From the sequence record MW879344.1: DNA of 64,000 nucleotides. One strand, given 5' to 3'. Of this stretch, positions 2,413 through 58,412 are shown piece after piece. The translations under genes and the position numbers were made by a program. Position 1 is the first letter of the stretch. Every line of letters starts with the position of its first letter. The notes beneath the pieces were generated by a model. It did not search any database. It was given only the letters and a program-made list of their open reading frames with translations, and had not been told where the DNA came from.

Positions 2413-2441
2413 TGGAACGACAAAAAAACATATGGTATAAT
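2413..2441 (+). promoter_or_regulatory. phage middle-type promoter TGGAAC-N17-TATAAT with extended -10
   Basis: TGGAAC 2413-2418, 17-nt spacer ending TATGG, TATAAT 2436-2441. One of 12 copies. Confidence 0.8.
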
Positions 2442-2444
2442 ATG

Positions 2445-2477
2445 AGCATCCTAACAAGGCGTTAGGGTGCTTTTTTT
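2445..2477 (+). terminator. intrinsic terminator
   Basis: AGCATCCTAAC/GTTAGGGTGCT stem followed by T tract. Confidence 0.8.
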
Positions 2478-2493
2478 ATACATGGAGATAATT

Positions 2494-2796
2494 ATGACCA
2501 AGAAGACTGAATCTAAGATCGAAGCACATGACCTAAATGATGCTCAACGTAAAAAGCTAAAAGATGGCTTGAATTCCGCTGTAGTTCAACTAACTCACCT
2601 AGACACCCTAAAAGAATCGTATGCTGATTTCATGGATACTCTAGCAGATGAAATTGGTCTTGACAAGGCAAAGCTAAAATCAGCAGCTATGCGTATCTAT
2701 AAGCAGGATTTCTTCGATAAAGTTCGTGCTCAAGATGAGGTAGAGACAATCCTTACTGTTTCTGGTAATCTATCTGCACCAATGGATGACGAATAA
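2494..2796 (+). CDS. T4 DsbA/GapR-like double-stranded DNA-binding protein
   Basis: Helical 100-aa protein, LADEIGLDKAKLKSAAMRIYKQDF resembles T4 DsbA. Start moved to ATG 2494 behind GGAG. Confidence 0.7.
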   Translation: MTKKTESKIEAHDLNDAQRKKLKDGLNSAVVQLTHLDTLKESYADFMDTLADEIGLDKAKLKSAAMRIYKQDFFDKVRAQDEVETILTVSGNLSAPMDDE

Positions 2797-2801
2797 TAAA
2801 T

Positions 2802-2832
2802 AATGCCCCAACGAATGGGGCATTTGCTTTTT
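2802..2832 (+). terminator. intrinsic terminator
   Basis: AATGCCCCA-acgaa-TGGGGCATT followed by T-rich tail. Confidence 0.7.
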
Positions 2833-2858: not shown

Positions 2859-5800
2859 ATGTATATAGATGGATATATGGATAGAAAACGTACTGGTGAA
2901 GTTCTGCATGTGGCTGAACGTGTCAATGGTCAACGTATCTTACGTGAAATTGAACCAGTTTACGAGTATTATGTAGAATCACCATATGGTACATTTAAAA
3001 CAATCAACGGAACCTTAGCTGAACGTTTTGAATTTACTAGATATTCCGAAATGAAGAAACAAATGGATACATTACCTAGTACTGCACAGATTTTTGAAGC
3101 AGATTGTAATGTTACATTCAAAACATTAGCTAAACACTATATGGGTAAGTCATCACCTGATTTGAATATCGTATTTTTCGATATTGAAACGGACTTTCAC
3201 CCAAAGTTCGGCTATGCGTCACCTAGTGATCCTTTCAATAGAGTTACTGCAATTTCATTATATCAAAGCTGGACAGGTAAGGATTATGTACTTACTATGG
3301 CACCATCCGAGATGGAAATTGTAGAAGCACAAGATATTATCAACCGCTTGAATGCAGAAACTGATGATCCGAATAGTACTGTAGTACTTTATACTGATGA
3401 ATGTGAAATGTTCTCAGATTTCTTCGATTTGATTGAAGATTCTGATGTTTTATCTGGTTGGAACAGTGAGTTTTATGATATTCCTTATATGGTAAACCGA
3501 ACTCGTAAATTGTTTAATGAAGCAACTCTTGCTCGTTGGTGTTTATGGAATCGTAAACCAAATCCTCGTGAAGCAGATATGTTTGGTAAAACAATTGTAA
3601 CTTATGATTTAGTAGGTCGCGTACATTTGGATTACCTAGCACTATACAAAAAACATGCTGGTCAAGTAGAACAATCATATAAATTGGATTATATCGCAGA
3701 AAAAGTCACTGGTGAAAACAAAGTAGCATATGATGGGTCTTTGGATAAATTATATCGTGAAGATTATCTAAGATTTCTACGTTATTCCAAACAGGATAGT
3801 ATTCTTCTAAAGAAAATTGATGATAAGATGGATTTCATCAACCTACACAATCGATTGGCTCATAAAGAGTGTGTTCTAATAAGTACCACAATGGGTTCTG
3901 TAGCACTAATTGATACTGCAATCATCAATCTAGCTCATAAACGCGGTGAAGTAGTATTCAACAAGCGTAAACTTGACGATGATGAAGATGATTTCGATTA
4001 TCAAGAGTATGAAATGGATTATGAAGATGAAGATGAAGACAATGATGAACCAAAAGCAGGTTCTAAAGCAGCAGGTGCATGGGTTCAAGATCCAGTACTT
4101 GGTTTAATCGACTTCTTAGGCTGTGTAGACTTCAACTCACTATATCCAACAGTTCTACGTGCATTAGGTATGAGTACTGAATGTATTCTTGGTCAATTGC
4201 GTCAAACATATACAGATGCATATCTTGCTGAACGTATTGAAGAACAACGTATGAAATATCGTGGAAAAGGTCGATTTGAGCCTAAATGGACTGAAGCATG
4301 GCATGGTTTATTTGCAAGTGTTGAATTTACTATGGTTCGTGAAAAATCAGATGGTATAATTACTGTTGATTTAGAAGATGGTTCATCATTCCAAGCAACT
4401 GGTGCAGAACTATATGATATTATCTATGGTGAAGGTAGTACTATAGTACTAAGTGCGAACGGAACGTTATTTGATAAGACAAAGTACGGTGTTATTCCAG
4501 AAATTCTTACAATTTGGTATTCTGAACGTAAAGCACAACAAAAAATGGTTATTGACTATAAGCATCTTGCAACAGATGGATGGGAATTAGCTGAAGAAAT
4601 CGTTTCAGAATTGGAAGAAGCGTTGAAATCACTACAATATGGTGATAAAATTCACAAAACCAACTTACATGAGGATGATCCAGTATATCTAATTCGCTTA
4701 GCACTAGCGAAGGGTGATATTGAAGGAACAGCAAAACTTATTGCTGAAAATGGTATGCGTTTTGAAGGTGGTAAGGTGTTTGCACCTGAAAGTGATAAAA
4801 AATACTGTAAAACACAGTCTGCATTCTGGAAACAGAACCAACAGATTCGTAAAATTCTTCTAAACTCACTATACGGTGCTTTGTTGAATAAAGGTTCTCG
4901 TTTCTTCGACAAACGTCTAGGACAATCAGTAACGTTAACTGGTCGTAGTATGACTAAACACCTTGCAAGTAAGATAAATGAAGTATGCACTGAAACTTAT
5001 GATCATAGTGGTGGTGTTGTAGTATATGGTGATACCGACTCAGTGTATTTTAGTGTAGCACACTATTATAAAGAGAATGATATACCGTTTGACATGTCCA
5101 AAGAAGAAGTAATTGAACTATATCAGATGATTGGTGATACCGTAGGTGCATCATTCCCTTCATTTATGGATGAAACCTTTAATACTGGTATTGATAATGG
5201 TAAAATTGTGGGAGCAGACTTAGAAATGGTTGGTTCTCGTGGATTATTCTTGAAAAAGAAACGTTATGCTATCCTAAAATATTGGGAAGATGGATTCCGT
5301 TTAGATGTTGATGGAAAACCTGGTAAGGTTAAAGCGATGGGTCTTGAGATTAAACGTTCTGATACACCAAAATATATTCAAAACTTCCTAGAAGATACAC
5401 TTACTGCATTACTTGTTGGTGCAGAGGAAGAAGAATTACGTGCTAAGGTTCGTGAATTCAAGAAACTATTCAAAGATCGTCCATCATTTGAGAAAGGTCA
5501 ACCTAAAACAGTTAAAAATTATTCTAATAAGTTTAAAGAATATGAAGAAACTGGTCAATGTAGGGTAGGACACGTTCTTGCAGCAATACAATGGAACAAA
5601 TTGCGTACCATTTATGATGATATGTCAGTTCCAGAAGCAACTGACGGTACTAAAGTTATCGTTTGTAAGTTAAAACCAAACCCATATGGTATTAAATCCG
5701 TTGGTTATCCAATAGATTGTACTGAATACTTACCTGAGTGGTTCTTATCATTGCCATTTGATGATGATGATATGGAAAAAGCCGTTCTTACTAAGAAATT

Positions 5801-5891
5801 AGGTAACATTTTTGGTATTTTGGATATGGATTTGGCAATAAATGAAAAAAGTTCCATCGAATTGAACACTGGTTTCTTTGCATGGAGTTAA
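2859..5891 (+). CDS. gp43: family B DNA polymerase (T4 gp43-like)
   Basis: Exo I DIETDF, Exo II GWNSEFYD, Exo III YSKQD; polymerase motifs DFNSLYP, KILLNSLYG, YGDTDS, KKRY. Confidence 0.98.
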   Translation: MYIDGYMDRKRTGEVLHVAERVNGQRILREIEPVYEYYVESPYGTFKTINGTLAERFEFTRYSEMKKQMDTLPSTAQIFEADCNVTFKTLAKHYMGKSSPDLNIVFFDIETDFHPKFGYASPSDPFNRVTAISLYQSWTGKDYVLTMAPSEMEIVEAQDIINRLNAETDDPNSTVVLYTDECEMFSDFFDLIEDSDVLSGWNSEFYDIPYMVNRTRKLFNEATLARWCLWNRKPNPREADMFGKTIVTYDLVGRVHLDYLALYKKHAGQVEQSYKLDYIAEKVTGENKVAYDGSLDKLYREDYLRFLRYSKQDSILLKKIDDKMDFINLHNRLAHKECVLISTTMGSVALIDTAIINLAHKRGEVVFNKRKLDDDEDDFDYQEYEMDYEDEDEDNDEPKAGSKAAGAWVQDPVLGLIDFLGCVDFNSLYPTVLRALGMSTECILGQLRQTYTDAYLAERIEEQRMKYRGKGRFEPKWTEAWHGLFASVEFTMVREKSDGIITVDLEDGSSFQATGAELYDIIYGEGSTIVLSANGTLFDKTKYGVIPEILTIWYSERKAQQKMVIDYKHLATDGWELAEEIVSELEEALKSLQYGDKIHKTNLHEDDPVYLIRLALAKGDIEGTAKLIAENGMRFEGGKVFAPESDKKYCKTQSAFWKQNQQIRKILLNSLYGALLNKGSRFFDKRLGQSVTLTGRSMTKHLASKINEVCTETYDHSGGVVVYGDTDSVYFSVAHYYKENDIPFDMSKEEVIELYQMIGDTVGASFPSFMDETFNTGIDNGKIVGADLEMVGSRGLFLKKKRYAILKYWEDGFRLDVDGKPGKVKAMGLEIKRSDTPKYIQNFLEDTLTALLVGAEEEELRAKVREFKKLFKDRPSFEKGQPKTVKNYSNKFKEYEETGQCRVGHVLAAIQWNKLRTIYDDMSVPEATDGTKVIVCKLKPNPYGIKSVGYPIDCTEYLPEWFLSLPFDDDDMEKAVLTKKLGNIFGILDMDLAINEKSSIELNTGFFAWS

Positions 5892-6386: not shown

Positions 6387-6415
6387 TGAAACGTATACGA
6401 ATTATATGGTATAAT
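6387..6415 (+). promoter_or_regulatory. middle-type promoter TGAAAC-N17-TATAAT, overlapped by an inverted repeat
   Basis: TGAAAC 6387-6392, TATAAT 6410-6415; inverted repeat 6391-6424. Confidence 0.85.
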
Positions 6416-6446: not shown

Positions 6447-7178
6447 ATGGAATTACGTGACGTACTACGCGACCTAGTAACTACTACGGCAGGAATTGAT
6501 TTTGATTGTATCGCTATTTCAAGCGAAGATCGTGGTCAAGGCCAAAGAATTTACATGGAAGCTTATACAAGTGATAAAAACCTAGTAATGCGAGCCGTTA
6601 CTAAAGAAGATGTATCTGAAGTTGTTGGTCGTTTTGGTATTGGTAATCTTGGAATGCTTCAAGGTCTATTGAACCTAAATGTCTACAAATCAGACAGTAC
6701 TAAAATTAGTGTGAATGCAAAAGATGGCGTGGTTAAAAGTCTATCCTTTACTTCAGACGATGCAAATACCAACTATCTAGTAGTTGCAGAGAAATTTATT
6801 CCACCTCAACCGCGTTTTACTGACCAACCATATGACGTACAGGTTACACCTAGTGCATCAAAGGTCAATGAACTAAAAAGCTTCTCAGGCGTGTTTAAAT
6901 CTTTTACTGCTCACGTTACCCCTTATACTGAGGATAACAGCTTATACTTCTACGTAGGTGAAAAGAATAAAAACAACCATACTGGTACTTTACTATTCTC
7001 TAAGACAGATGGCGATCTAACTCAGGGTTATGGTTATCCAATTGAACGTGTTCTTCAAGCATTGAATCGTGTAAACAATGCTGAACAAAAATCTCTTGGT
7101 ATTACAAAAACTGGTATGTTAAATGTAACTGTTGATACTGGTATTGCAGTTTATAGCATCTACGTAAGTGGTTGCTAA
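6447..7178 (+). CDS. gp45: sliding clamp (T4 gp45-like)
   Basis: 243 aa with alternating beta/alpha pattern; EVVGRFGIGNLGMLQGLLNL aligns with gp45 DFDVAIYDLNGFLGILSL; under a replication-type promoter. Confidence 0.7.
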   Translation: MELRDVLRDLVTTTAGIDFDCIAISSEDRGQGQRIYMEAYTSDKNLVMRAVTKEDVSEVVGRFGIGNLGMLQGLLNLNVYKSDSTKISVNAKDGVVKSLSFTSDDANTNYLVVAEKFIPPQPRFTDQPYDVQVTPSASKVNELKSFSGVFKSFTAHVTPYTEDNSLYFYVGEKNKNNHTGTLLFSKTDGDLTQGYGYPIERVLQALNRVNNAEQKSLGITKTGMLNVTVDTGIAVYSIYVSGC

Positions 7179-10500: not shown

Positions 10501-10529
10501 TGGAACCACGCTCTAAAATGTGGTATAAT
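10501..10529 (+). promoter_or_regulatory. middle-type promoter TGGAAC-N17-TATAAT
   Basis: Exact spacing, TGTGG before the -10. Confidence 0.82.
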
Positions 10530-10532
10530 TGA

Positions 10533-11545
<1,013 letters not shown>

Positions 11546-11546
<1 letters not shown>

Positions 11547-15763: not shown

Positions 15764-15781
15764 AATCCCCTTTACTCATGT

Positions 15782-15906
15782 ATAAATAAATGAAACATTA
15801 TACCAAAATATGGTATAATATGAGTAATTCGATAGCACGGCGTGTTATCAAATAAACGTCAGTCATGACGAGAAATATGAAACGTACCGCAAATTTGTGG
15901 TATAAT
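15782..15906 (+). promoter_or_regulatory. promoter stack for the ssb operon: one late motif plus two middle-type promoters
   Basis: TATAAATA 15781-15788; TGAAAC-N17-TATAAT at 15791-15819 and 15878-15906. Confidence 0.82.
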
Positions 15907-15987: not shown

Positions 15988-17043
15988 ATGGCAACATTAG
16001 CAGAAATTCGTGCTCTATTAAAAGCAGAACAAGACAAAGCAGAAGCAATCAAAAGTGGTACATTCTCAGGCGGTAATGGTCAACCGGATGCGTTTCTAGC
16101 ATTCTGGAACATTCCAGAGAATCAAGATTTGAATCTACGTTTTCTACCAGATTCAGATATTAATAACCCTTACTTCTGGCGTGAGCGTGAGATGATTAAT
16201 CTTGAGTTCAACGGAATTGTTGGTGGTCACACCGATAAAGTTAAATTACAAGTACCTTGTAATGAAATGTGGGTTCCAAATTCTTGCCCTGTTCTTACTG
16301 AAATTCGTCAGTGGTATAAAGCTGCGAACGAAACTGGTAACGAAGATCTAAAGAAACAAGCATCTAAGTACTGGAAAAAGAAATCTTATCTATTCCAATG
16401 CCTAGTAGCTCCAGGTTCAGTTGAAGTTAAAGATGACAACGCACCTGAAAATCCAATTCGTCGTGTTCTAGTGAACAAAGATTTGTTCGAAAAGATTAAA
16501 TCTATTCTAATGAATCCAGACGTTGCTGAACTTCCAACTCATTATCAACATGGACGTGATTTCCGTGTGATTAAGAGTAAGAATGCTGGTGGTTATAACA
16601 ACTACGATGCTTCTCAGTTCAAATTCTCTGAGCGTCCACTAAATGAAGACGAACTAGCTGCAATTGAACAGTATGGCTTATTTGATCTAAGTGAGTTCAT
16701 GCCAAAACAACCAACTCCAGAAGAACTAAATGCAATCCGTGAGATGTTTGAAGCATCTGCGAATGGTGAAGCATATGATCCTTCACGTTGGGCTGCATTC
16801 TACCGTCCAGCGGGTGTTCAAAAACCAGCAAATACTGGCTCAACCAGTACTACTGAAACCGTAAGTACTCCAGTAGCTAAACCTGCACAAACTGTAACTG
16901 CTCCAGTACAAACTACTGTAACAGAAACTGTTGTGGCTCAAGAAGCACCAGTTCAAGAAACCGCTACTGCGGCTCCAACTGAGAGTAAGCAAAAACTTTC
17001 TCCAGCAGAACTAGTTGCAAAACTAAAAGCTAAAGGTGGCTAA
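15988..17043 (+). CDS. gp32: single-stranded DNA-binding protein (T4 gp32-like)
   Basis: LRFLPD, CPV, KYWKKKSY, GRDFRVIK, GYNNYDASQF; T/A/P-rich tail. Confidence 0.9.
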   Translation: MATLAEIRALLKAEQDKAEAIKSGTFSGGNGQPDAFLAFWNIPENQDLNLRFLPDSDINNPYFWREREMINLEFNGIVGGHTDKVKLQVPCNEMWVPNSCPVLTEIRQWYKAANETGNEDLKKQASKYWKKKSYLFQCLVAPGSVEVKDDNAPENPIRRVLVNKDLFEKIKSILMNPDVAELPTHYQHGRDFRVIKSKNAGGYNNYDASQFKFSERPLNEDELAAIEQYGLFDLSEFMPKQPTPEELNAIREMFEASANGEAYDPSRWAAFYRPAGVQKPANTGSTSTTETVSTPVAKPAQTVTAPVQTTVTETVVAQEAPVQETATAAPTESKQKLSPAELVAKLKAKGG

Positions 17044-17106: not shown

Positions 17107-18243
17107 ATGAAAAACATTTCTGCGGGTCTAAGTAGTATTATCAAAAACAGTACTGCATCAGTTAAAAAGAATTCTGGTGTAAGCATGGGCTTCCATGATC
17201 CAGACACTTGGATTAGTACTGGTAATCTAGCATTGAACTATCGTATTAGCGGCGATTTTAACAAGGGTATCCCTCTTGGTAAAGTAACTATGTTCGCTGG
17301 TGAATCTGGTTCAGGCAAATCATTCATTGTATCAGGAAACATTATTCGTGAAGCACAACGTCAAGGTATATTTGTAGTCTTAATCGACTCTGAAAACGCA
17401 CTTGATTCCGATTGGCTACATGCACTTGGTGTAGATACTTCTGAAGACAAATTACTTAAAATGAATATGGGTATGATTGGTGATGTTGCTAAATTCACTT
17501 ATGAATTCATTGAAGGGTATCGTAAAGATTATGAAGATGTACCACGTGAAGAACGTCCTAAAGTACTATTCGTAATTGACAGTATCGGTATGTTAAACAC
17601 TGAAATTGCAAATGACCAAATGAAAGCTGGTAATCTTAAAGGTGATATGGGTCACAAGCCTAAACAACTTAAAGCTTACATTACTAACTGTGTAAACAGT
17701 ATGGGTGCATTGAATATTGGTATGGTATGTGTAAACCACTCATACGAAAGCCAAGATATGTTCAATCCAGACCCTAAAGTAAGTGGTGGTTCTGGTCTAG
17801 TGTATGCATCTAGTATTCTAGTAGTTATGGGTAAACTAAAACTAAAAGAAGATGAAGATGGTAACAAAACTTCAGAAGTTAATGGTATTCGTGCTAAGTG
17901 TAAAGTTATGAAGACCCGTTATAACAAACCATTTGAAGATGTAGAAATCAAGATTCCTTGGAACGAAGGTATGAATCCTCGTAGTGGATTACTTGACATG
18001 TTCGAAAAATATGGTTTAATTACTAAATCAGGTAACCGTTTACTATATGTTGATATTGACACTGGTGAACAGATTCTTCAGTACCGTAAGGATTGGATGA
18101 ATAATGTAAATTCCTGCTTAGATTTGGTAATGGGACAATTCACACGTCACCCATTGATCTCACACGTTACTGAAGAAGAAAAAGGTGATGAAGATTTTGG
18201 TACAGATATTGAAGTACCAAATACAGAGGTTAATGAGGATTAA
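17107..18243 (+). CDS. uvsX: RecA-like recombinase UvsX
   Basis: WISTGNLALN, Walker A GESGSGKS, DSENAL, VIDSIG, SGGSGLVYAS. Confidence 0.96.
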   Translation: MKNISAGLSSIIKNSTASVKKNSGVSMGFHDPDTWISTGNLALNYRISGDFNKGIPLGKVTMFAGESGSGKSFIVSGNIIREAQRQGIFVVLIDSENALDSDWLHALGVDTSEDKLLKMNMGMIGDVAKFTYEFIEGYRKDYEDVPREERPKVLFVIDSIGMLNTEIANDQMKAGNLKGDMGHKPKQLKAYITNCVNSMGALNIGMVCVNHSYESQDMFNPDPKVSGGSGLVYASSILVVMGKLKLKEDEDGNKTSEVNGIRAKCKVMKTRYNKPFEDVEIKIPWNEGMNPRSGLLDMFEKYGLITKSGNRLLYVDIDTGEQILQYRKDWMNNVNSCLDLVMGQFTRHPLISHVTEEEKGDEDFGTDIEVPNTEVNED

Positions 18244-19657: not shown

Positions 19658-21142
19658 ATGAGTGGAACTTGTAAGTTAATACTTCAAGATGAAGTTAACT
19701 GTAAATTTGAGGGGCTTGCCCCTAATATTCGACAAGAGATGATTCGTAAAGTATCATTTGTTTTACCTTATGCGAAATTCACACCAGCAGGAAGAATGGG
19801 ACGTTGGGATGGTAAAGTAAACTTTATGAATATCGGTGGTAGTACTTACTATCATATGTTAGATCAATTACTACCGATTCTTGAAAAACATAATATCATG
19901 ATTGAAATTGATGATCAACGTATTGAACATGATTTTGTATTCGATGCAATTGATGAAAATATTTTTGATTATGTTGAATTCCCTGCTGGACACCATATGG
20001 AAGGACAAAAGATAGTTCTTCGTGAGCATCAGGTAAATGCAGTAAACACTTGCTTGCAGAACCGACATGGTTTACTATTGGCAAGTACTAGCTCCGGTAA
20101 AACATTAATTACTGCTGCAATGTCAAAAAGTGTTGAAAAGTATGGTAGAAGTATAGTTATCGTACCAAATAAAGATTTAGTCCAACAAACATATAATGAC
20201 TATGCAATGGTTGGTTTAGATGCAGGTGTATTTTATGGTGATAAAAAAGAATTAAACCATCAACATACTATTACTACATGGCAATCATTAAACTCCCTAT
20301 GGAAGAAAACTAAGAAAGGTGAAATTGCTCTAACTGAGCAGGACATTAGTGACTTTATTAGTGGAGTTGTTGCAGTTGTTGTAGATGAAGCACATACGAG
20401 TGCAGCAGAAGCACTACATGCAGTACTTGGACAAGTAATGAAAAATATTCCTTTACGTTGGGGCTTGACTGGTACGATTCCTAAAGATCCAGTACTAGCA
20501 GCTAAGATTAAATGTAATGTAGGGGAGATTATCTATACAATATCTGCAAAAGAATTGCAAGATAAACAAATTCTTAGTACTTGTAATGTCAATTGCATTA
20601 GATTAAAAAGTTCTCTAAAATTTGGTAATTACCAAGAAGAATTGAAGTATCTTGTTACTGACCGTGATAGAATGAAGTATATCGCATCTTTAATAGCTGC
20701 TATAGCTGAATCGGGAAACACATTAGTACTAGTTGATAGATTAGAAGCTGGTGAATTATTATGTGAATTCTTAGGAATACCAAAATCTGAATTTGTTAGA
20801 GGTGAAACTAAGAAGAAAGACCGTGAAGCGTCTTATGGTGAAATACGATGGGCTGATAATAAGATACTTATTGCAACATATGGTGTAGCAAGTACTGGTA
20901 TTAGTATTAGTAGATTATACAATGTAGTACTTATAGAACCTGGAAAAAGTTTTGTAAGAACTATTCAGAGTATAGGTCGTGGACTTCGCCGTGCAGAAGA
21001 TAAAGACCATGTGGAGATCTATGATATTTCGGGCTTCAATAAGTTTAGTGCTAAGCATTCTCGTGAACGAATGTCGTACTATAAAGAAGTTCAATACCCT
21101 TATCAAGAATTGATTGTTGATAATTGGGAAAATATGGAATGA
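19658..21142 (+). CDS. uvsW: SF2 DNA helicase UvsW
   Basis: LREHQ, STSSGKT, VDEAH, GLTGT, QSIGRGLR. Confidence 0.94.
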   Translation: MSGTCKLILQDEVNCKFEGLAPNIRQEMIRKVSFVLPYAKFTPAGRMGRWDGKVNFMNIGGSTYYHMLDQLLPILEKHNIMIEIDDQRIEHDFVFDAIDENIFDYVEFPAGHHMEGQKIVLREHQVNAVNTCLQNRHGLLLASTSSGKTLITAAMSKSVEKYGRSIVIVPNKDLVQQTYNDYAMVGLDAGVFYGDKKELNHQHTITTWQSLNSLWKKTKKGEIALTEQDISDFISGVVAVVVDEAHTSAAEALHAVLGQVMKNIPLRWGLTGTIPKDPVLAAKIKCNVGEIIYTISAKELQDKQILSTCNVNCIRLKSSLKFGNYQEELKYLVTDRDRMKYIASLIAAIAESGNTLVLVDRLEAGELLCEFLGIPKSEFVRGETKKKDREASYGEIRWADNKILIATYGVASTGISISRLYNVVLIEPGKSFVRTIQSIGRGLRRAEDKDHVEIYDISGFNKFSAKHSRERMSYYKEVQYPYQELIVDNWENME

Positions 21143-21163
21143 AAAGATTTTTTGTGATATAAT
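21135..21163 (+). promoter_or_regulatory. middle-type promoter TGGAAT-N17-TATAAT
   Basis: Exact spacing, TGTGA before the -10. Confidence 0.75.
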
Positions 21164-21634: not shown

Positions 21635-21643
21635 GGAAATCAC

Positions 21644-26031: not shown

Positions 26032-26060
26032 TGGAATGTCCTATAAAAATGTGGTATAAT
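26032..26060 (+). promoter_or_regulatory. middle-type promoter TGGAAT-N17-TATAAT
   Basis: Directly ahead of the primase-helicase operon. Confidence 0.82.
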
Positions 26061-32145: not shown

Positions 32146-32481
32146 ATGAGGTTCAGTCAGATAACCGAAGATGCACCAGGTAAAGATATACGTAATATGA
32201 TTAGTACTATAGCTTTATCATTAATCGCTACTGGTAGAGAACAAATAAGTATTCAATCATTGATTAATGAAATAAAAAAGCGTACTAATATCGATGTTCC
32301 ATATAATGTAATGATGGATATTCTTAATGAACTTCCATTTGTTCAGGATGCAAATTCTGATATGGTAACACTTCAAGGCTCTGATACATCACCTGATGGT
32401 GATAATGCAGAATCATCAGAAGAACAAGTTACTGATATGGCAACTAAAGCAGCATCATCAAATTTAAAACAAGATATTTGA
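32146..32481 (+). CDS. putative head protein
   Basis: Starts MRFSQITE|D, a T4-like cleavable leader; GGAGG SD. Confidence 0.55.
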   Translation: MRFSQITEDAPGKDIRNMISTIALSLIATGREQISIQSLINEIKKRTNIDVPYNVMMDILNELPFVQDANSDMVTLQGSDTSPDGDNAESSEEQVTDMATKAASSNLKQDI

Positions 32482-32507
32482 AACAAACGAAAAACATGTG
32501 CTATAAT
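32479..32507 (+). promoter_or_regulatory. middle-type promoter TGAAAC-N17-TATAAT
   Basis: Exact spacing, TGTGC before the -10. Confidence 0.82.
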
Positions 32508-38024: not shown

Positions 38025-38231
38025 ATGGCATTTCAAAGTAATGATATATTCACATTTGATCCAGCATGGATATATAAATTTACATTAATGGGTGGATTAC
38101 AAATTACCGGTACTATAATTAGACCTTTTGATAATGGGATAGTACTAAACGATGGCACCCATATCCCAACGGATAAGATAGTATGCTTTATACCAATATC
38201 TATTATAAAAGAAAATGAAACACCAGAATAA
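38025..38231 (+). CDS. small hypothetical protein (Sm/Hfq-like beta pattern possible)
   Basis: GGAG SD; KFTLMGGLQITGTIIRPFDNGIVL. Confidence 0.5.
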   Translation: MAFQSNDIFTFDPAWIYKFTLMGGLQITGTIIRPFDNGIVLNDGTHIPTDKIVCFIPISIIKENETPE

Positions 38232-38244
38232 TTTCTGGTATAAT
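38216..38244 (+). promoter_or_regulatory. middle-type promoter TGAAAC-N17-TATAAT
   Basis: Exact spacing, TCTGG before the -10. Confidence 0.8.
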
Positions 38245-41077: not shown

Positions 41078-41106
41078 TGAAACGGAGAACAACAATATGG
41101 TATAAT
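41078..41106 (+). promoter_or_regulatory. middle-type promoter TGAAAC-N17-TATAAT
   Basis: Heads the frd-rnhA-dda operon. Confidence 0.82.
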
Positions 41107-41135: not shown

Positions 41136-42473
<1,338 letters not shown>

Positions 42474-42477
<4 letters not shown>

Positions 42478-43814
42478 GTATTACGCTTACGGACAAGCAA
42501 CAATATATTTTTGATGACATTATTGACAGAATCAACAACTTCCCTGGTCGAACTGAGGCTGTAATTGTTGGTTATGCAGGAACTGGTAAAAGTACTTTAG
42601 TTTCTAAAATTATTGAGAATATATATCAGGGATATAATATAGCAGTAACTTCACCAACACATAAAGCAAACTCAGTACTTCGTAATATGTTACGAGATGT
42701 TGGATTAGATAAAGATGATGCATTAGTAAGTACAATTCACTCTTTTTTAGGATTGAAATTGGTCTATGAAAAAAATCGTCAAGTTCTTAAACATGATCCA
42801 CGTTCAGCTAATAGTACTGCTATGGTTGATGTTCTATTTGTTGATGAATGTAGTATGATTTCGGAAGAAATGTATAATCACATTCTTAGTCAGATTCATA
42901 GGGTTCGTCGTGCAGTTATTTTTATTGGTGACTCATGTCAGCTACCACCAGTGGAAGCCGAAGGAACACTTGGTGAAACAAAACTTAGTCCAACTTTTGA
43001 TATTAAATTAAAGTATGAACTAACCGAAGTATTACGTCAAGCACTAGACAATCCTATTATCAATATTGCAACACAAATTCGTGAATGTATTGGTACAAAT
43101 AGAGATCCTTTACTTATTCTAAATCAACTAGAGGGTTTAGAAACAATTCATCCAATCGAGGATGAAATGGAATTTTTAGACATATATAAGATGTACATTA
43201 ATGAACATCGCGGATCAGCTAATAAAATATATGACTTTGTTCAAGAAAATAAAATTATTGCATATACAAATTATCGTGTAAACTTTGCTAATATGTATAT
43301 TCGCAATGAAGTATTTCCAGAGCATACTAATTCTGAATTTATTAGTGGTGAGCCAATTGTTTTTGAAACAACAACAGAAAACTGTCCATACATGGTTCAG
43401 CAAGTAATTCAATGTCCTGAGATTCGGGCGGAATCATTTTTGGGTATTGATTGCTGGCAATTCAAATTACCAAATGGAAGTTATATTTCAGGAGTAGGTC
43501 CATATTCTAGATTAAAATTGGAAGCACATCTTGAAGATTTAGTTGACAAGATTGAACGTAAAGTTGAAAATCCGTTAACTAAAAAGCCTTTTATGTGGCA
43601 AGATTATTATGTTATTAAAAATAAGATGAACGTAATAAACTATCCATATGCTACAACTGCTCATAAGTCTCAGGGAAGTACTTTTAATAATATTTGGTTT
43701 GATACTGACTTCATTGAGAGAATCCCAAATAATGATACAAAGTGTCGAATATTGTATACAGCATTGACACGCCCTCGGTATCATGTTATGTTGAGGAAAA
43801 ACGGAAGGTTCTAA
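42474..43814 (+). CDS. dda: Dda-like SF1B DNA helicase
   Basis: GYAGTGKS, SPTHKA, VDECSM, GDSCQLPPV, LTEVLRQ, TAHKSQGST, YTALTR. Confidence 0.93.
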
Positions 43815-44814: not shown

Positions 44815-44842
44815 TTGACTTTTACGAAATTCGTGTTATAAT
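44815..44842 (+). promoter_or_regulatory. sigma70-like promoter (TTGACT-N16-TATAAT, extended -10)
   Basis: Upstream of the IF3 gene. Confidence 0.65.
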
Positions 44843-50945: not shown

Positions 50946-50976
50946 AACGATGCAGAGATGCATCGTTATTTTTTTT
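50946..50976 (+). terminator. intrinsic terminator
   Basis: AACGATGCA-gaga-TGCATCGTT plus T tract. Confidence 0.82.
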
Positions 50977-51004
50977 GAAACAAAGAAACAAATTATGCTA
51001 TAAT
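50976..51004 (+). promoter_or_regulatory. middle-type promoter TGAAAC-N17-TATAAT
   Basis: Heads the topoisomerase operon. Confidence 0.82.
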
Positions 51005-51037: not shown

Positions 51038-53026
51038 ATGGCAAAGGAAAAGAAAAGTTCTGTTCTAGCTGAACACGGTGTTCAACAATTAACTGAATAT
51101 CAACATGCTCGAATCCGTACTGAAATGTACTTAGGTTCGAAGTCTGAACATGAGCAACCAGTTCTTCTATTCAACGAAGATGGTTATACTGTGCAAAATT
51201 TAGGTTGGGTTCCTGCCCTATTAACATCATTCCGAGAAATCGTTGATAACTCGTTAGATGAATTCGTTAAAGCTGGTACTAAAGATCCAGTACTACGTGT
51301 TACATATAATGAAGATGAACTTGATTTTGAAATTAGCGATAACGGTCGTGGTATTCCAATTGATTATGTTCCAGAAACACAAAAACATGTGTGTACTATG
51401 GTACTAACCGAGATGAAAACTGGTCGTAACTTTAATGATGATGAACGTAACAATGTCGTTGGTATGAACGGTCTTGGTGGTTCAGTTGTTATGATTGTAA
51501 GTGAGAAAGCTGAAATCGAAATTCACCGTGCAGGTAAACCTTACAAAACTGACAAAGCAAATGCCGAATATGATGGTATGTATAAATTCACACAAAAGTT
51601 CACTGAAGGTACAGCAATGTTCCCTGAACTTGGAATTGAAGAACCAAGTATTCGTAAAGTAAAAGCTGATAAGACTGGAACTACGGTTCGATTCAAAATC
51701 AGTAAAGAAGTATTCAAAGTACACACACTACCTATTCAACTAGTATATAGTATTCTTAAAGAAGTTGCAGCGGCGAATCCATCGTACAAAATCTTTTTGA
51801 ATGATCAACGAATTACTGTGAATAAAAAAGGTTTATTTAGTTCTGCTAAGAATACAATGACTCTTAAAGTTGATGACAGTGAAACTGGACTTGACAGTAC
51901 TTTCTACATTGTACCCAATGTAGTACAGGGTCTTAACAAGAACCTACATATGCAAGGTCTTGTTAACAACGCACCATCACTAGAAGGTGGTACACACTTA
52001 GATACGTTCCAACAGAAATTTGCACTTGGTGTTATCAATGCATTGGATCGTATTCCAAAAAATAGAAAACGCAATCTAAAACCAAACCGTTCTGATATTG
52101 AAGAAGGTCTGTTGATTTACAACATCACTAAGATGAATACACCAACATTCAACTCTCAAATCAAAACAAAACTAACTAATGAAAACGTCATAAAGCCAGT
52201 ACAAAACGCAATGAGCGATGAATTCTTTAATGAACTTGTTAAGAAAAATACCGAGTGGGTTGAAGAAATTTATACTCGTTGTGCTGAACGTACCAATAAA
52301 AAGGATGCAGACGAAGATCGTAAAATGGCAAAACGTCTTCTAAAAGGCAAAGTAGCTAAACTACGTGATGCAAATGGTCAAAACCGAAGTGAATGTATTC
52401 TTCTAATTGCAGAAGGTGATTCAGCAGTAAGTTCTATGACAGCGGCACGTAACTCTACTATTCATGGCATTCTTCCATTACGTGGTAAGATTCAAAACGT
52501 AAATGGAAAAGAGAAGACAAAAGATCTAATGGGTACTGCGGATAAGCCATCTGCAATTCATGATATTATGGCTTCTCTAAACATTGTTCCTGGCGAAAAA
52601 GCAGTTCGTTCAAATATGAACTTCGGTAAACTTTATATCTGTGCAGATGAAGATGAAGATGGTAAGAACATCGGTGCTCTAGTAGTAAACTTCTTCTATA
52701 AATTCTGGCCTGAATTGTTTGCTGATCCAGAAGATCCATTCATTTATATTTTCAAAACCCCATTCATTATTTTAGAAAAGGGTAAAGAATCTAAGTACTA
52801 CTATGGTCATAATGTCCATGAGTATAATCCTGATGATTGGAAAGGTTGGAAAGCAACTCGTGCTAAAGGGTTAGGTACTCTTGAAGTATCAAACTTCAGA
52901 GATGCACTAGCAAATGGTGTAGCAATCGCAATTACTGATGATGGTTCATTAGGGGAAACTCTAGATCTTATCTTCAATAAAGAACGTGCTGATGACCGTA
53001 AAGAATGGACTAAAGAAGACATGTAA
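51038..53026 (+). CDS. type IIA topoisomerase ATPase/TOPRIM subunit (T4 gp39+gp60 fused, GyrB-like)
   Basis: EIVDNSLDE, DNGRGIP, GMNGLGG, AEGDSA, PLRGK, DEDEDG, KGLGT. Confidence 0.96.
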   Translation: MAKEKKSSVLAEHGVQQLTEYQHARIRTEMYLGSKSEHEQPVLLFNEDGYTVQNLGWVPALLTSFREIVDNSLDEFVKAGTKDPVLRVTYNEDELDFEISDNGRGIPIDYVPETQKHVCTMVLTEMKTGRNFNDDERNNVVGMNGLGGSVVMIVSEKAEIEIHRAGKPYKTDKANAEYDGMYKFTQKFTEGTAMFPELGIEEPSIRKVKADKTGTTVRFKISKEVFKVHTLPIQLVYSILKEVAAANPSYKIFLNDQRITVNKKGLFSSAKNTMTLKVDDSETGLDSTFYIVPNVVQGLNKNLHMQGLVNNAPSLEGGTHLDTFQQKFALGVINALDRIPKNRKRNLKPNRSDIEEGLLIYNITKMNTPTFNSQIKTKLTNENVIKPVQNAMSDEFFNELVKKNTEWVEEIYTRCAERTNKKDADEDRKMAKRLLKGKVAKLRDANGQNRSECILLIAEGDSAVSSMTAARNSTIHGILPLRGKIQNVNGKEKTKDLMGTADKPSAIHDIMASLNIVPGEKAVRSNMNFGKLYICADEDEDGKNIGALVVNFFYKFWPELFADPEDPFIYIFKTPFIILEKGKESKYYYGHNVHEYNPDDWKGWKATRAKGLGTLEVSNFRDALANGVAIAITDDGSLGETLDLIFNKERADDRKEWTKEDM

Positions 53027-53034
53027 AAATTAGT

Positions 53035-53053
53035 GGGGTACATGAAGTACCCT
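53035..53053 (+). other. intercistronic hairpin between topoisomerase genes
   Basis: GGGGTAC-atgaa-GTACCCT; weak U tract. Confidence 0.45.
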
Positions 53054-53076
53054 CAAATATCAAAGAGGCAAATGGA

Positions 53077-54486
53077 ATGCGTAAACCTAAAAAAATTGCA
53101 GAAGTAGTTCCTAATGAACTAACTCTATTGAACTTTCAAAGTTCAGACTATATTAACCAATCATCCCTAGAATATGCGTTAAGTACTTTTGACCGTTCTC
53201 TACCAGGGATTGATGGTTTTAAAAACTCACAACGAAAAGCAATCTTTACTCTAAGTAAAATTAGTGGTGAGATCAAAACAGTATCTTGTGCAGGTCGTAT
53301 GATTAGTGATGGTATCTATCTACACGGCGATGCTTCAGCTAGTGGTACATTACAAAATCTAGCTAGTCCAGTAGTTAACAACTATCCACTAATTGGAAAG
53401 CGTGGTGGATTTGGTACACAGGTAAATCCTGAACCAGCTAGTCCACGTTATACTTATGTGAAGAAAACTAAAATTACTGAAGCTTTAGTACTTCGTGATT
53501 TAGATGTTGTTCCGATGCAAGAGAACTATGATGGTACAACATATGAACCAAAATTCTTCTTACCATTAATTCCACTAGCGTTACTAGGAGTAGATGGAAC
53601 AGCGACAGCATATAAAAGTTTTATTTTTCCTTATCGTATGAATGATATTATTGATAATACTATTCGTGCTATTGATGGTAAAGAATTACTACCAATGACT
53701 CCATACTATGCAAGTTATGGTGCTAACGATTATGTTGAAGATCGTGGAGAAGGTAAGTATACATTCTTTGGTAAAGCTGAAGTTATTGATGCAAGTACTG
53801 TGAGAATTACTGGTTTATCACCACGTATGAAACTAGAAAAATTTGTTGAAGATTTGATTGCAATGGAAGATTCTGGTAAAATTCGTAGTTATGATGATAA
53901 CAGTTCAGGTAAAGTAGATATTACCATTAAACTACCACGTGGTCTTAGTACTACATGGAACGAAATGGATGTGCTTCAATATTTTGACATTTCAACAAAA
54001 TTAGCACATACCCTTAATGTTTTAGGTGAAAATGGAAAAGTAAAAAGTTACACCGATGTTCAGAGTATAATCTCGGACTTCGTTCAGTTCAGATTCAAGT
54101 ACTACATTAAACGTTATGAAAAGTTACTTGCTGACGCAGATGCAGAGGTTCGTTATAAAATTCTTGTAAAAGAATGTTTTGATAACGACATGACTGGTAA
54201 GATTAAATCTTTCCAAAACCGTGCAGAACTAGTAGAATTTGTTACTTCATTGAATAATGAAATTGAAGCATCAGATGAAAATATTCAAGGCATTGTTAAT
54301 TTCCCAAGTTATCGGTGGACTCAAGAAAACTATGATAAAGTACTTCAAGATATTGAAGATGCATTAGCTAAGATGGATGAGTATAATGATTTGCTTGCTA
54401 ATCATGATAAAATCTGGAATATCTACAAAGATGAACTTATTGAACTACGTAATATGAACATCGAATACAAAGAAGATACTGAATAA
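53077..54486 (+). CDS. gp52: type IIA topoisomerase DNA-cleavage subunit (T4 gp52, GyrA-like)
   Basis: DGFKNSQRK, YLHGDAS, catalytic ASPRYT. Confidence 0.95.
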   Translation: MRKPKKIAEVVPNELTLLNFQSSDYINQSSLEYALSTFDRSLPGIDGFKNSQRKAIFTLSKISGEIKTVSCAGRMISDGIYLHGDASASGTLQNLASPVVNNYPLIGKRGGFGTQVNPEPASPRYTYVKKTKITEALVLRDLDVVPMQENYDGTTYEPKFFLPLIPLALLGVDGTATAYKSFIFPYRMNDIIDNTIRAIDGKELLPMTPYYASYGANDYVEDRGEGKYTFFGKAEVIDASTVRITGLSPRMKLEKFVEDLIAMEDSGKIRSYDDNSSGKVDITIKLPRGLSTTWNEMDVLQYFDISTKLAHTLNVLGENGKVKSYTDVQSIISDFVQFRFKYYIKRYEKLLADADAEVRYKILVKECFDNDMTGKIKSFQNRAELVEFVTSLNNEIEASDENIQGIVNFPSYRWTQENYDKVLQDIEDALAKMDEYNDLLANHDKIWNIYKDELIELRNMNIEYKEDTE

Positions 54487-54541: not shown

Positions 54542-54574
54542 CCACAAAGCTTTTTATGTTTTTGGAGATAATAT

Positions 54575-57500
54575 ATGGCAAACTTCGAACCCAAATGGGA
54601 TTTGAGAGCTGATACCAATTCAATTAAAGAAGGACAGACCACATACTTTAGACTGCGAATTTCTAAAAGTCAAACAACTTCACCAAATAATGAATATGTA
54701 CTTCAAGATGATCAATATCTTGAATTTACATTTAACATTGTTGGGGCAGGGGAAACTTTAGAAGAACGTGATTTTAATGTATCTATAGGTGAAAGTACTT
54801 CTTCTTTAGTTCCAATCGGTGAAGCTGGAACTGGAACCCCTCATATTCAGGGTAAACATGTAGTAAAACTTAGTAGAAAAGATTTCCAATTAAGTTCAAG
54901 CGTAACATTCATTGATGCATTCTTTTTTAAAATAGAATGTCCTGAAGATGGTATATGGGATGGTCCAGAATCATTAACATTTAACATTGACAGCATAAAT
55001 GAAATTACTCTTTTAGATGGTCAAATTGCAAATACAATGCCAAGTGGGGTATTGGGAACTAGTACACAAGTACTGAATTATAATACTGCTGGAGAAATTT
55101 GGCTAACACCTAATTTAACGACCCACGGTGATAATCTTTATACAATTGGTGGTATTGGATATGGTGCCGAAAGTAGATTGTTCATTCAAGCATTTGGACA
55201 AAGTAGAACAATAAATGGTGTAACTAATGTTTTTATGCCATCGTATGAAGTGCAAGATATAACAATGTCAGATATTCCATCTGAACATATTACTGGTTCA
55301 GGAACAATTTTAGTACCGGATGAATCGGCACTACCTTCTATTCCAGAATATCCTATAACTTTAGGTACTACTAGGAATCAAATAAATTCATTTTATATGA
55401 AGAATGTTGCTAATTTAATGTCTGGTGCTGGTTGTATTATTCAAGGAACTACACTAACAGATCATAATAATGAACTCTATTATAGTTATGGAATAAGAGT
55501 ATATGCAAATACTGGTTTCAAATTAATGTGTCCAGCAGAAGCAGAAAGTATATATGTAAGTAATGTAAATGCTGTAAATGCAGGTGGTATAAATTCTTCA
55601 TTGTCTGAATTAACAGAATATGGTATATTAGATACGAACAAAATTGGTAGATGTGATATATATGGTAATGTAAAACATGAACCACAAACAATAGTCTTAC
55701 CACCATCCACTACCGGTGGTCAAATGGTAATTTATATTCGAGTTAAGGTTAGTAATACAATTTGCCCACCTTGGATTTCATTTAATGTAATATCATTTAA
55801 TAGTCCAATTCTAAAATCTTCTAATACATTGGATAATAGAATTTATATTAACACAAACAGTACTGCATTAAATTCAGTTGAACTAGATAACATTTTACAT
55901 GCAGCAGTTGCTGGTTCTGGATGGACAACATCATATAATGCCAATAATACAAAAAATCAAGTACCAAATACTATAGAACCAGTTGAGATTCGAAAATTAG
56001 AGGAAAACTCTATTATGATCAGAGATGAAATTGGAAATATGGTACAATCAGGATTGAAATTTAATGCTAATGGACAATTTGTTCAAACATTCATTTATGA
56101 TTCAGAACCAGTAGATGCATATTTTCGTGCAACTATTCTTTCTATAAAGGATTTTTATAATACTGATACTGATGCATACTATGTTGGTAAAAGATTCCGT
56201 GCATATAATGTATGGGTTTGTCCAGCAGATGTTACTAACTTCTCAACAAAACCAAAACCTGGACATTTATATCAATTAAAAGATACTAAAGTATATCCTT
56301 ATGTTGTTAAAGATACTGTTGTTGAAGGTATAACTAAAATTTTATTTGAAGAAGATAAATGGTACGATTTAGGATTGTATAATGAATCATTAGGTGCTAA
56401 TATCATAGGTTCCGAAAGGATGTTTAGAATTGTAGTTAATGATGATACTGGTACTGATATTTCTTTTGAAACTGATTCCAACTTAGGTGAAATTCATGTT
56501 GGTGAATATTTTGGTCATACGGTTTATCCAAAAATCGTTGCAACTGGTTCAGAATTAATAACCTACACAATAAATGCAAGTACTTCACCAAATGATATTA
56601 CAAAGTACGGAATAGATTTAACTGCTGATGGATTTATTGTAGGGGAAGCATATGCATTAAGTACTGATTTTTCTGCCAATGATGACATACCTTTGCAGTT
56701 CGATGTAGTTGCAACTGGTAAAAACGGTAAATCATTGACACAACGTTTTAAAATTCGTATAGTTCGTGGTTTAGGTCAAAACTTCTTACATGCTGATATT
56801 TGTCCATCACTTTCATTAGAACGTGCATGGTTCAGAATGATTAGTACTACAGCATTTAGTAGAGCAAATTACTATCGTGCATCAGATCCAAGATATGGTG
56901 TTAAGAAAGTCCCACGCATTCTTATGAAAGAAAACTTCGTTGATCCTAATAAGAATTGGGAAGGGATAAAACAAACCGTATTAAATATTCGAAATGGTAT
57001 TGTTGATACAGCACATGGTGCACCTACACCAGATGGTTCATTCCGACTAGTACTAGGGAATTATAAATTACGTTCAGCACTTGACAATCAAGGAAATGTA
57101 CTGTATGATGTTCTATACAGAGAGTTACATTCAGAAGGAACACAAGTAAGTTTAAGTTTAAATCCATTGAAATATACTGATTATTCAACATCACTTATTT
57201 CAGAAATTTATGGTCTACGTCAAAATGTGTACAACATTGTTGGTGAAGATACTGTGAACTTATTAACTGATCCTACAGATTTGAACAATCGTGGTATAGT
57301 AGTTGATCCTATTAACGGATTATCAGTTGAAATGCTAGATACAGTTCCTCGTTATATGAACCATCCATATGTTGAAGATAACATTAAGCCAATGTACTTC
57401 CCATGTATACCAGTTGCTTACTTACAACCAGGACAAGGGGAAGTATTCTTTAATACATTGATTCAAAATAACGAACATGGTACATTACTCAATACTGAGT

Positions 57501-57604
57501 TTGAAGTTTCTGGAGTTGAATTCAGTTACTTCGTACAAGACAATGAGAGATACGTACCAGAAACCTTTATGGCCTCATTAAGAGTGCCGAACCTATTTCA
57601 ATAA
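54575..57604 (+). CDS. large virion structural protein (baseplate wedge-like)
   Basis: 1009 aa, beta-rich Ig-like character, late motif upstream. Confidence 0.6.
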   Translation: MANFEPKWDLRADTNSIKEGQTTYFRLRISKSQTTSPNNEYVLQDDQYLEFTFNIVGAGETLEERDFNVSIGESTSSLVPIGEAGTGTPHIQGKHVVKLSRKDFQLSSSVTFIDAFFFKIECPEDGIWDGPESLTFNIDSINEITLLDGQIANTMPSGVLGTSTQVLNYNTAGEIWLTPNLTTHGDNLYTIGGIGYGAESRLFIQAFGQSRTINGVTNVFMPSYEVQDITMSDIPSEHITGSGTILVPDESALPSIPEYPITLGTTRNQINSFYMKNVANLMSGAGCIIQGTTLTDHNNELYYSYGIRVYANTGFKLMCPAEAESIYVSNVNAVNAGGINSSLSELTEYGILDTNKIGRCDIYGNVKHEPQTIVLPPSTTGGQMVIYIRVKVSNTICPPWISFNVISFNSPILKSSNTLDNRIYINTNSTALNSVELDNILHAAVAGSGWTTSYNANNTKNQVPNTIEPVEIRKLEENSIMIRDEIGNMVQSGLKFNANGQFVQTFIYDSEPVDAYFRATILSIKDFYNTDTDAYYVGKRFRAYNVWVCPADVTNFSTKPKPGHLYQLKDTKVYPYVVKDTVVEGITKILFEEDKWYDLGLYNESLGANIIGSERMFRIVVNDDTGTDISFETDSNLGEIHVGEYFGHTVYPKIVATGSELITYTINASTSPNDITKYGIDLTADGFIVGEAYALSTDFSANDDIPLQFDVVATGKNGKSLTQRFKIRIVRGLGQNFLHADICPSLSLERAWFRMISTTAFSRANYYRASDPRYGVKKVPRILMKENFVDPNKNWEGIKQTVLNIRNGIVDTAHGAPTPDGSFRLVLGNYKLRSALDNQGNVLYDVLYRELHSEGTQVSLSLNPLKYTDYSTSLISEIYGLRQNVYNIVGEDTVNLLTDPTDLNNRGIVVDPINGLSVEMLDTVPRYMNHPYVEDNIKPMYFPCIPVAYLQPGQGEVFFNTLIQNNEHGTLLNTEFEVSGVEFSYFVQDNERYVPETFMASLRVPNLFQ

Positions 57605-57613
57605 GGAGGATTT

Positions 57614-57916
57614 ATGTTTCATCCGTTTTTCGATCCTTCATCTTTAAGTGATAAAGAACTTTATGATAAAATCACTGAAGTTTCGCTTCGTATAAGTGCT
57701 GCTCGTTCAGCAGGTATACAATACGAAATGATACAATCTATGTTCACCGTAATTCAAGCTTGTGAGTTTGAGATTCAGAATCGCCAAGCTCACAAAGACT
57801 TGGAGCAAGCGGCAAAAGAAGATAATTGTATTTTTGATTCAGACAGCTATTTAAATGACAAAGATGATAAGAAACATGAAAGTACAAGAAAACAGAACTA
57901 TAAGCGAGGATGGTGA
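57614..57916 (+). CDS. hypothetical protein
   Basis: AGGAGG SD; overlaps the dnaE N-fragment. Confidence 0.65.
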   Translation: MFHPFFDPSSLSDKELYDKITEVSLRISAARSAGIQYEMIQSMFTVIQACEFEIQNRQAHKDLEQAAKEDNCIFDSDSYLNDKDDKKHESTRKQNYKRGW

Positions 57917-58394
57917 TGTACGTTTAAATCTGAACGCCGTGGTTTATGCAATAAATTGCGGCACAGATATTACATATATCCAGCTTAATGAGCAAGATGA
58001 ATTTGAACGTTTAAAGTTCAATGACAACTGCAAGAAATTTGGACTATCGGAACGTATGTTAGATTACACCATAGAACATGATAAAAATCATGAATTATGG
58101 CGGTATGATCCAGCTTATGATAAAATCAACTTAGAAGATTATTTTCTTTCTTTATGTAGTACTGATATAGAACGTGATAGAGTACTATATGAATTAAGTT
58201 TATATGAAAACTATAACATGACTAAACTATTACGCTGTATGATATGGTTGGTAGATTACCTAGAAGAACATAATATTTTTTGGGGATTAGGTCGTGGAAG
58301 TTCCGTAAGTAGCTTCTGTTTATACTTGATTGGATTACACTTAGTTGATTCAGTTAAATATGAATTAGATGTGAATGAATTTTTGAAATGGTAA
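57876..58394 (+). CDS. dnaE: DnaE-like N-terminal palm/thumb fragment (N-part of a split C-family polymerase)
   Basis: DRVLYEL, WGLGRGSSVSSFCLYLIGLHLVDSVKYELDVNEFL aligns with DnaE [34 protein letters not shown]; start 57855 or 57876. Confidence 0.88.
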   Translation: MKVQENRTISEDGDVRLNLNAVVYAINCGTDITYIQLNEQDEFERLKFNDNCKKFGLSERMLDYTIEHDKNHELWRYDPAYDKINLEDYFLSLCSTDIERDRVLYELSLYENYNMTKLLRCMIWLVDYLEEHNIFWGLGRGSSVSSFCLYLIGLHLVDSVKYELDVNEFLKW

Positions 58395-58412
58395 AAAAAT
58401 TTATGGTATAAT
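58384..58412 (+). promoter_or_regulatory. middle-type promoter TGAAAT-N17-TATAAT
   Basis: Exact spacing, TATGG before the -10. Confidence 0.8.

Follow-up and report, generated by a model that had tools for sequence, protein, structure and literature searches.

The window analysed here, a 64,000-nucleotide stretch of DNA corresponding to about positions 186001-250000 of the genome of Erwinia phage pEa_SNUABM_49 (MW879344.1; 100% identity), carries genes of replication, recombination and nucleotide metabolism together with a recurrent promoter element, TGRAAY-N17-TATAAT. We refer to promoters of this form as class M, for middle class. pEa_SNUABM_49 is a Rak2-like jumbo myovirus of 358 kb. Serratia phage BF, a member of the genus Eneladusvirus, has a 357-kb genome, is likewise a Rak2-like jumbo myovirus and is 99.8% identical to the window. 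Because BF is well annotated, its whole genome was taken as the proxy for everything beyond the window, and the names of genes downstream of class-M sites follow its annotation; the gp45-clamp label for the open reading frame (ORF) at 6447-7178 was taken from the annotation of phage fENko-Kae01.

Twelve class-M sites with one fixed spacing

A pattern search for TGRAAY-N17-TATAAT returned exactly 12 matches in the window, all on the + strand, where 0.29 would be expected by chance and the largest count among 100 shuffles was 3. The same hexamers separated by an 11-nt gap gave no match in the window, and permitting one mismatch added only three weak candidates. At all 12 sites the TATAAT is immediately preceded by T-n-T-G-n (TATGG, TGTGG, TGTGA, TGTGC, TCTGG or TATGC), the spacer is A-rich, and an A/T-rich stretch lies further upstream. 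Every site is intergenic or lies over the final codons of the upstream ORF, and the next + strand ORF begins 13-168 nt past the -10.

These features had been picked out in an earlier reading of the window's letters, the original prediction, which described 12 copies of exact spacing. All twelve are present where they were placed, site alignment bears out the TnTGn and the A-rich spacer throughout, and the two ways in which the distance had been written, N12-TnTGn and 17 nt, denote one spacing. The accompanying list of replication, recombination and nucleotide genes agrees broadly with the BF annotation (for the clamp, with that of fENko-Kae01).

Counted over the whole BF genome, the pattern has 40 copies at spacing 17, of which 39 are on the + strand and 37 carry TGn, and between 0 and 3 copies at each of the spacings 14-16 and 18-21. 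Viewed from the -10, the box is present at 37 of the 66 + strand TGnTATAAT sites in BF. The BF consensus consists of an A-rich stretch, TGAAAC, an a, four unconserved bases, A-rich bases and TnTGGTATAATAT. Information content reaches about 2.2-2.4 bits at G-34 and C-30, and position -36 is not conserved. The class is not limited to replication genes, as it also heads tRNA blocks. One of the BF copies, at 169796 and outside the window, lies 76 nt upstream of the gene for a gp55-like late sigma factor, an arrangement that suggests a three-step cascade.

How far these sites resemble promoters of the host depends on which half is considered. The -10 element of host sigma70 (TATAAT, with optional TGn) is found at 12 of the 12 window sites and at 37 of the 40 in BF. 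A host-type -35 (TTGACA-like, 16-18 bp from the -10) is not found: in the 17-bp register the box matches two of the six positions. In the 18-bp register up to four of the six match TTGACA; yet the conserved G-34 and C-30 are not bases that sigma70 reads.

BF also has a second, distinct class, in which a strict TTGACA/T is combined with a variable -10 and the upstream bases are characteristic. Its members are concentrated where small early ORFs lie, at 1-19 kb and at 248-346 kb, and a gene for an RpoD-like sigma factor lies in one such region. Within the window, exact matches to TTGACW-N16-18-TATAAT occur at 44815 and 63942 and nowhere else, with more TTGACA sites from about 63231 onwards. Canonical promoters had been predicted only at 44815 and from 63230 on, which holds for exact matches; near-consensus host-type ones do exist inside genes (for instance at 56735).

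Two of these host-type sequences deserve a separate remark. The one at 44815-44842 (TTGACT-N16-TGTTATAAT) is the sole canonical intergenic promoter in the replication module and precedes a gene for an IF-3-like translation initiation factor. The one at 56735-56763, a near-perfect TTGACA-N17-TATAGT within the gene for a 1009-aa virion protein, has TATAAT as its -10 in BF.

The -35 box changes in concert between lineages

Orthologous promoters precede the same genes in CBB, Hallingskeid, fENko-Kae01, PBECO4 and RaK2, which makes six lineages including BF (Table 1). At orthologous sites the spacers have diverged and TGnTATAAT is retained with minor variation. The upstream box differs from lineage to lineage, and it does so at all sites of one genome together. 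Kaldavass and Hallingskeid both have Erwinia aphidicola as host. The box is TGRAAC in Kaldavass, whose RpoD-like sigma carries the helix SKATLSRRY, and TGRGAYA in Hallingskeid, with the helix SHSTIHRRY. Since these phages share one host species and have different boxes, the box follows the phage and not the host. Taken together, the concerted shift between lineages and the difference between same-host phages argue that the box is read by a phage-encoded factor.

More distant relatives widen the comparison. Two metagenomic lineages with S-type sigma helices, whose sigma identity is only 42-47%, use TGAAAC too. In one of them, a metagenomic XaC1-like lineage, class M takes the form TGAAAY-N17 with TGTGCTATACT or TATATT; that is, the -10 has shifted to TATAYT. 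No class-M site was found in the 10-kb flanks of the sigma gene of that lineage (L032), and its ssb locus (L034) was taken instead. The link between the two rests on an identical ssb protein recorded for a 349,780-bp contig equal in size to the sigma-bearing one.

At the orthologous places before ssb and primase, PA5oct carries canonical TTGACA-N17-TATAAT (L037 11880-11912 and 24225-24256; two sites examined), in agreement with the published PA5oct promoter set. These sites are like class M in the genes they precede, in their place relative to the start codon, in TATAAT and in the 17-bp spacing. They are unlike it in carrying TTGACA at -35, and PA5oct-like phages have no detectable RpoD-like sigma homologue, as judged from the organism counts of two tblastn searches.

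Table 1. Class-M promoters, the phage sigma gene and the lineage-specific boxes. Coordinates are those of the window unless another record is named.
Feature	Sequence	Coordinates	Strand	Context	Orthologous sites
Class-M promoter	TGGAAC-N17-TATAAT	2413..2441	+	before small ORF 2494-2796, then DNA polymerase gene 2859-5891	CBB, fENko-Kae01, PBECO4
Class-M promoter		6387..6415	+	before ORF 6447-7178 (gp45 sliding-clamp-like)	CBB, Hallingskeid, fENko-Kae01, RaK2
Class-M promoter		10501..10529	+	divergent intergenic region, before RNaseH/5'-3' exonuclease gene 10548-11546	four other lineages
Class-M promoter, upstream member of tandem pair		15791..15819	+	before ssb 15988-17043	tandem pair conserved in CBB, Hallingskeid, Kaldavass
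Class-M promoter, downstream member of tandem pair		15878..15906	+	before ssb and UvsX-like recombinase gene 17107-18243	
Class-M promoter	TGGAAT box	21135..21163	+	overlaps end of UvsW-like helicase gene; before ORFs 21197-24661	
Class-M promoter	TGGAAT box	26032..26060	+	before primase 26090-27136 and DnaB-like helicase 27144-28625	all five other lineages, each with its own lineage's box
Class-M promoter		32479..32507	+	before exonuclease gene 32521-33222	
Class-M promoter		38216..38244	+	before ORF 38273-38506 and nucleotide pyrophosphohydrolase operon	
Class-M promoter		41078..41106	+	before membrane protein/DHFR/RNase H/Dda helicase operon 41136-43814	
Class-M promoter		50976..51004	+	before topoisomerase II genes 51038-54486	Hallingskeid
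Class-M promoter	TGAAAT box	58384..58412	+	before ORFs 58443-59484 and clamp-loader gene 59481-60440	
RpoD-like sigma gene		MW879344 332177-333166		outside the window; BF gp413, 330 aa	
Class-M promoters, metagenomic XaC1-like lineage		L034 4250-4300, 9900-9960, 16650-16760			
Box, BF, CBB and Kaldavass	TGRAAC-N17 to -10				
Box, Hallingskeid	TGRGAYA-N16 to -10				
Box, fENko-Kae01	TTGGGACA-N17 to -10 (TGGGACA type)				
Box, PBECO4	TGRGACA-N16 to -10				
Box, RaK2	TGAAC-N17/18 to -10				

A phage-encoded RpoD-like sigma factor

The RpoD-like sigma gene is present in pEa_SNUABM_49 and in every Rak2-like lineage examined, with identities from 87% down to 30%. In the BF protein, gp413, Pfam detects sigma region 2, and similarity to SigA/RpoD spans region 2 through the first helix of region 4.2, with E 1e-17 for the single protein and 1e-32 for a family profile. 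The AlphaFold model of gp413 has a C-terminal four-helix domain (predicted local distance difference test score 81-92), and Foldseek returned sigmaS and sigmaA as the top matches to the model with a probability of 1.0. hhalign places the C-terminal domain on sigma70 region 4.1 together with the first helix of 4.2 (probability 24%, E 8e-4). The genome encodes a sigma70-family protein with region 2 and region 4, the latter recognised by profile extension, hhalign and the model. Past the first helix of 4.2 the protein has a loop insertion and then a recognition helix that does not resemble its sigma70 counterpart. In region 2, the residues corresponding to sigma70 Y430, Q437 and R441 are retained. 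A genome that holds an RpoD-like sigma with regions 2-4 offers a simpler candidate reader of the box than an activator would be.

A region 4.2 of the extracytoplasmic function (ECF) type was considered and rejected, as hhalign of the C-terminal domain gave a probability of 0.4% against E. coli RpoE versus 24% against sigma70 region 4. As DNA motifs, TGAAAC and GGAAC resemble the GAAC/AAC -35 elements of ECF (group IV) sigmas.

Variants of the box go with the lineages of the sigma. Where the alignment places sigma70 R588, which is residue 308 of the BF protein, the recognition helix of the phage sigma has Ser or His, and this pairs with A or G in the box; but the division between S-type and H-type helices falls on a single branch of the sigma tree (98/97 support).

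A comparative study and a 2026 review state that jumbo phages of this group, which lack an RNA polymerase of their own, encode RpoD-like sigmas 'likely' serving phage promoters. A sigma factor was detected by mass spectrometry among the proteins of fENko-Kae01 virion preparations (PMC11218385). Promoters are not treated in the papers on RaK2 and fENko-Kae01, and our literature search found no relevant transcriptomes of Asteriusvirus phages.

Relation to known promoter systems

The promoter class itself is already known. Buttimer et al. 2017 (PMC5259590) described in CBB a second promoter type with a classic -10 and a -35 of TGAAACG. By MEME, 18 copies were identified there; 11 precede CBB_258-329, of which many encode DNA-synthesis proteins, and the motif was noted in Cronobacter phage GAP32 as well (PMC5259590; Abbasifar et al. 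2014 as cited there). The same report places an RpoD-like sigma gene in the early region of CBB and adds a gp55-like late sigma (PMC5259590). These 'divergent RpoD-like' promoters of CBB and GAP32 share consensus, spacing and downstream genes with the window class. TGAAAC(G) replaces TTGACA ahead of a classic -10 in both, the window consensus being TGAAACa...TnTGGTATAAT, and in the 50 kb of CBB syntenic with the window ten orthologous sites precede the same genes. The description of the promoters as uncharacterised, made in the original prediction, cannot stand beside the published CBB motif and its mention for GAP32, and the window adds another genome to the class.

The CBB report gives 18 copies and names no reader, compared with 12 copies in the window and 40 in BF here. 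Our comparison goes beyond it in that the extended -10 is invariant here and more distant relatives have their own lineage-specific versions of the box. Judged by the literature searched, two points are new: the concerted switch of the box between lineages and the canonical -35 in a relative with no detectable sigma.

Middle promoters of T4, whose phase falls between the early and the late one, carry a MotA box (TGCTT core) centred near -30, at 11-13 bp from the -10, and AsiA remodels region 4 of sigma70. Class-M promoters are like them in having a good sigma70-type -10, often with TGn, a non-host upstream box, and replication and nucleotide genes downstream. They are unlike them in the box itself, which is TGRAAC rather than TGCTT and occupies -35 to -30 at exactly 17 bp from the -10 rather than lying near -30 at 11-13 bp; the proposal that TGRAAY defines a distinct class and is not a MotA box is borne out. 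With T4 MotA and AsiA as queries, neither the BF genome nor its six-frame ORFs yielded a homologue (tblastn and phmmer, best E 0.2-0.6), and an AsiA family profile likewise found none in BF (best E 0.7). Homology to MotA/AsiA was rejected on these noise-level matches in BF, whose identity to the genome of the window is 99.8%.

Phage-encoded sigma factors that read their own promoters form another point of comparison, SPO1 gp28 being one of them. Others are gp47 of phage 7-11, with promoters of the form GTAAtg-N16-aCTA, and gp36 of phiEco32, with tAATGTAtA (PMC8948821). What the Rak2-like system may share with these two is a phage protein of the sigma70 family that binds the core enzyme of the host and recognises a motif specific to the phage, the motif being bipartite where region 4 is kept (PMC8948821). 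It differs in that the -10 here equals the host consensus, leaving only the -35 distinct. The Rak2-like sigma, at E 1e-32 to SigA, also stands far nearer to group 1/2 sigmas than those phage sigmas do.

Which protein reads the class-M box

What has been observed is the motif with its fixed spacing, positions, conservation and lineage variants, together with the presence and fold of the phage sigma. We infer that the box is read by this sigma, and likewise when it acts. In the reading that we favour, and consider probable, host sigma70 comes first in a cascade, the phage RpoD-like sigma follows with action on class M, and the late sigma comes last. Host sigma70 would transcribe the early regions, one of which holds the sigma gene, from TTGACA-type promoters. 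The phage sigma would then direct the host RNA polymerase core to class-M sites, where its diverged region 4.2 helix would read TGRAAC at -35 to -30 and its regions 3.0 and 2.4 would read TnTGnTATAAT. Class M would in this way turn on replication, recombination, nucleotide and tRNA genes as well as the gene for the gp55-like late sigma.

Several points weigh against a phage sigma as reader. All genome-wide counts come from BF and not from pEa_SNUABM_49 itself. Pfam finds no region 4 family in the C-terminal piece of the sigma, and the recognition helix cannot be confidently aligned with that of sigma70. The tryptophans W433/W434 are replaced by T/A; in region 3.0, E458 is lost and H455 is retained in BF but is Y in three lineages. 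With the residues for the extended -10 and the bubble partly lost, host sigma70 could still read the invariant TGnTATAAT, and this invariant, host-like -10 itself leaves room for host sigma70 at that element. In a generic sigma70 scan the sites score 10 of 12, with TG and a spacer of 18 nt, so they may well fire somewhat with the host holoenzyme. The correspondence between helix S/H and box A/G amounts to one change on the tree and is thus not independent evidence; a single-event match of this kind would arise for any lineage-specific protein. The sigma gene has a terminator-like hairpin directly 5' of it in BF (330293-330322; L008 29893-29922), and a promoter of its own was not identified. 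Finally, the literature searched contained no promoter or sigma experiment on any Rak2-like phage.

On the hairpin, the Munch record annotates a terminator at the same place before the sigma gene (L016 1462-1489). Expression of the sigma may depend on read-through from early promoters.

The chief rival keeps host sigma70 on TGnTATAAT and supposes that a phage anti-sigma or activator protein, unrelated to AsiA/MotA, displaces region 4 and reads TGRAAC. Such appropriation has its precedent in T4. It would suit a -10 and extended -10 that are a perfect sigma70 consensus, near-constant across lineages with only the upstream box varying, and a phage sigma that has lost several of the sigma70 residues for extended -10 contact. 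Small ORFs without a known function crowd the early region, and a gene for a helix-turn-helix protein adjoins the sigma gene in CBB and Kaldavass. Nevertheless, neither tblastn, phmmer nor the family profile recovered a MotA/AsiA homologue in BF, and the box sits exactly at the -35 hexamer with rigid spacing, as expected for sigma region 4, rather than at -30 like MotA. One lineage has changed the class-M -10 too. In addition, since no more than three promoter classes have been recognised here and in CBB, none would remain for the RpoD-like sigma to read. We judge this explanation unlikely, and less likely than recognition by the phage sigma. Should an unrecognised protein indeed read the lineage-specific box at -35 with host sigma70 on TnTGnTATAAT, this would be a second, independent invention of appropriation, with the RpoD-like sigma serving other, undetected promoters, which seems to us decidedly unlikely.

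The original prediction had proposed a reader other than the host's, in the form of a sigma-appropriation system with its own activator. The first part is upheld insofar as the concerted change of the box and the difference between same-host phages point to a phage-encoded reader; MotA/AsiA-like appropriation is disfavoured by the missing homologues and the presence of the RpoD-like sigma.

Extended -10 promoters can function without a good -35. Host sigma70 holoenzyme might accordingly act by itself, with the sites as strong extended -10 promoters, TGRAAC as a tolerated poor -35 (nTGRAA at an 18-nt spacer) and no phage factor; the generic scan fits this, but we regard it as very improbable, given that the T required at -36, the first position in the 18-nt register, is not conserved while C-30, outside the hexamer in that register, is among the most conserved bases, that the box differs between phages of one host species and shifts in concert across genomes, that a relative with no detectable sigma keeps TTGACA at orthologous sites, and that the true host-type promoters of this genome have a different appearance.

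If class M is indeed read by the phage sigma, the Rak2-like phages provide a natural series of related sigma/-35 pairs (TGRAAC, TGRGAYA, TGGGACA, TGRGACA and TGAAC) on one common -10. Such a series could be used to work out how region 4.2 encodes -35 specificity and might supply orthogonal expression parts. It would also define a three-step transcription cascade for very large phages used against Erwinia, Serratia, Klebsiella and E. coli.

Further observations at individual sites

At the first promoter, a 12-bp stem-loop followed by a T-run, terminator-like in form, occupies window 2444-2472 and begins 3 nt past the -10. A transcript starting about 7 nt after the TATAAT would begin within the 5' arm of the stem-loop. 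CBB seems to share this arrangement.

About a quarter of class-M sites have a spacer whose 5' part is reverse-complementary to the extended -10. Instances lie at window 15797-15819 and at BF 92954, 101101, 125709, 223627 and 258749, with examples such as ATTATACCA..TGGTATAAT, CCACAA..TTGTGG and CCACA..TGTGG. The mean stem of 4.05 compares with 3.64 for permuted pairs, a value reached in 2 of 2000 permutations. The excess over the permuted controls is modest, and this dyad symmetry forms no part of the model.

The UvsW-like helicase gene of the XaC1-like lineage (L034 13891-16694) is split by an intein (Hint/Intein_splicing) with an ORF for a NUMOD3 endonuclease. For Yersinia phage fHe-Yen9-03 (LT960552.1), the record annotates minus_10 and minus_35 signals at the ssb gene. 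In the window, a late-type TATAAATA at 15781-15788 abuts the upstream ssb promoter; this sequence is rare there, with 5 copies versus about 12 expected.

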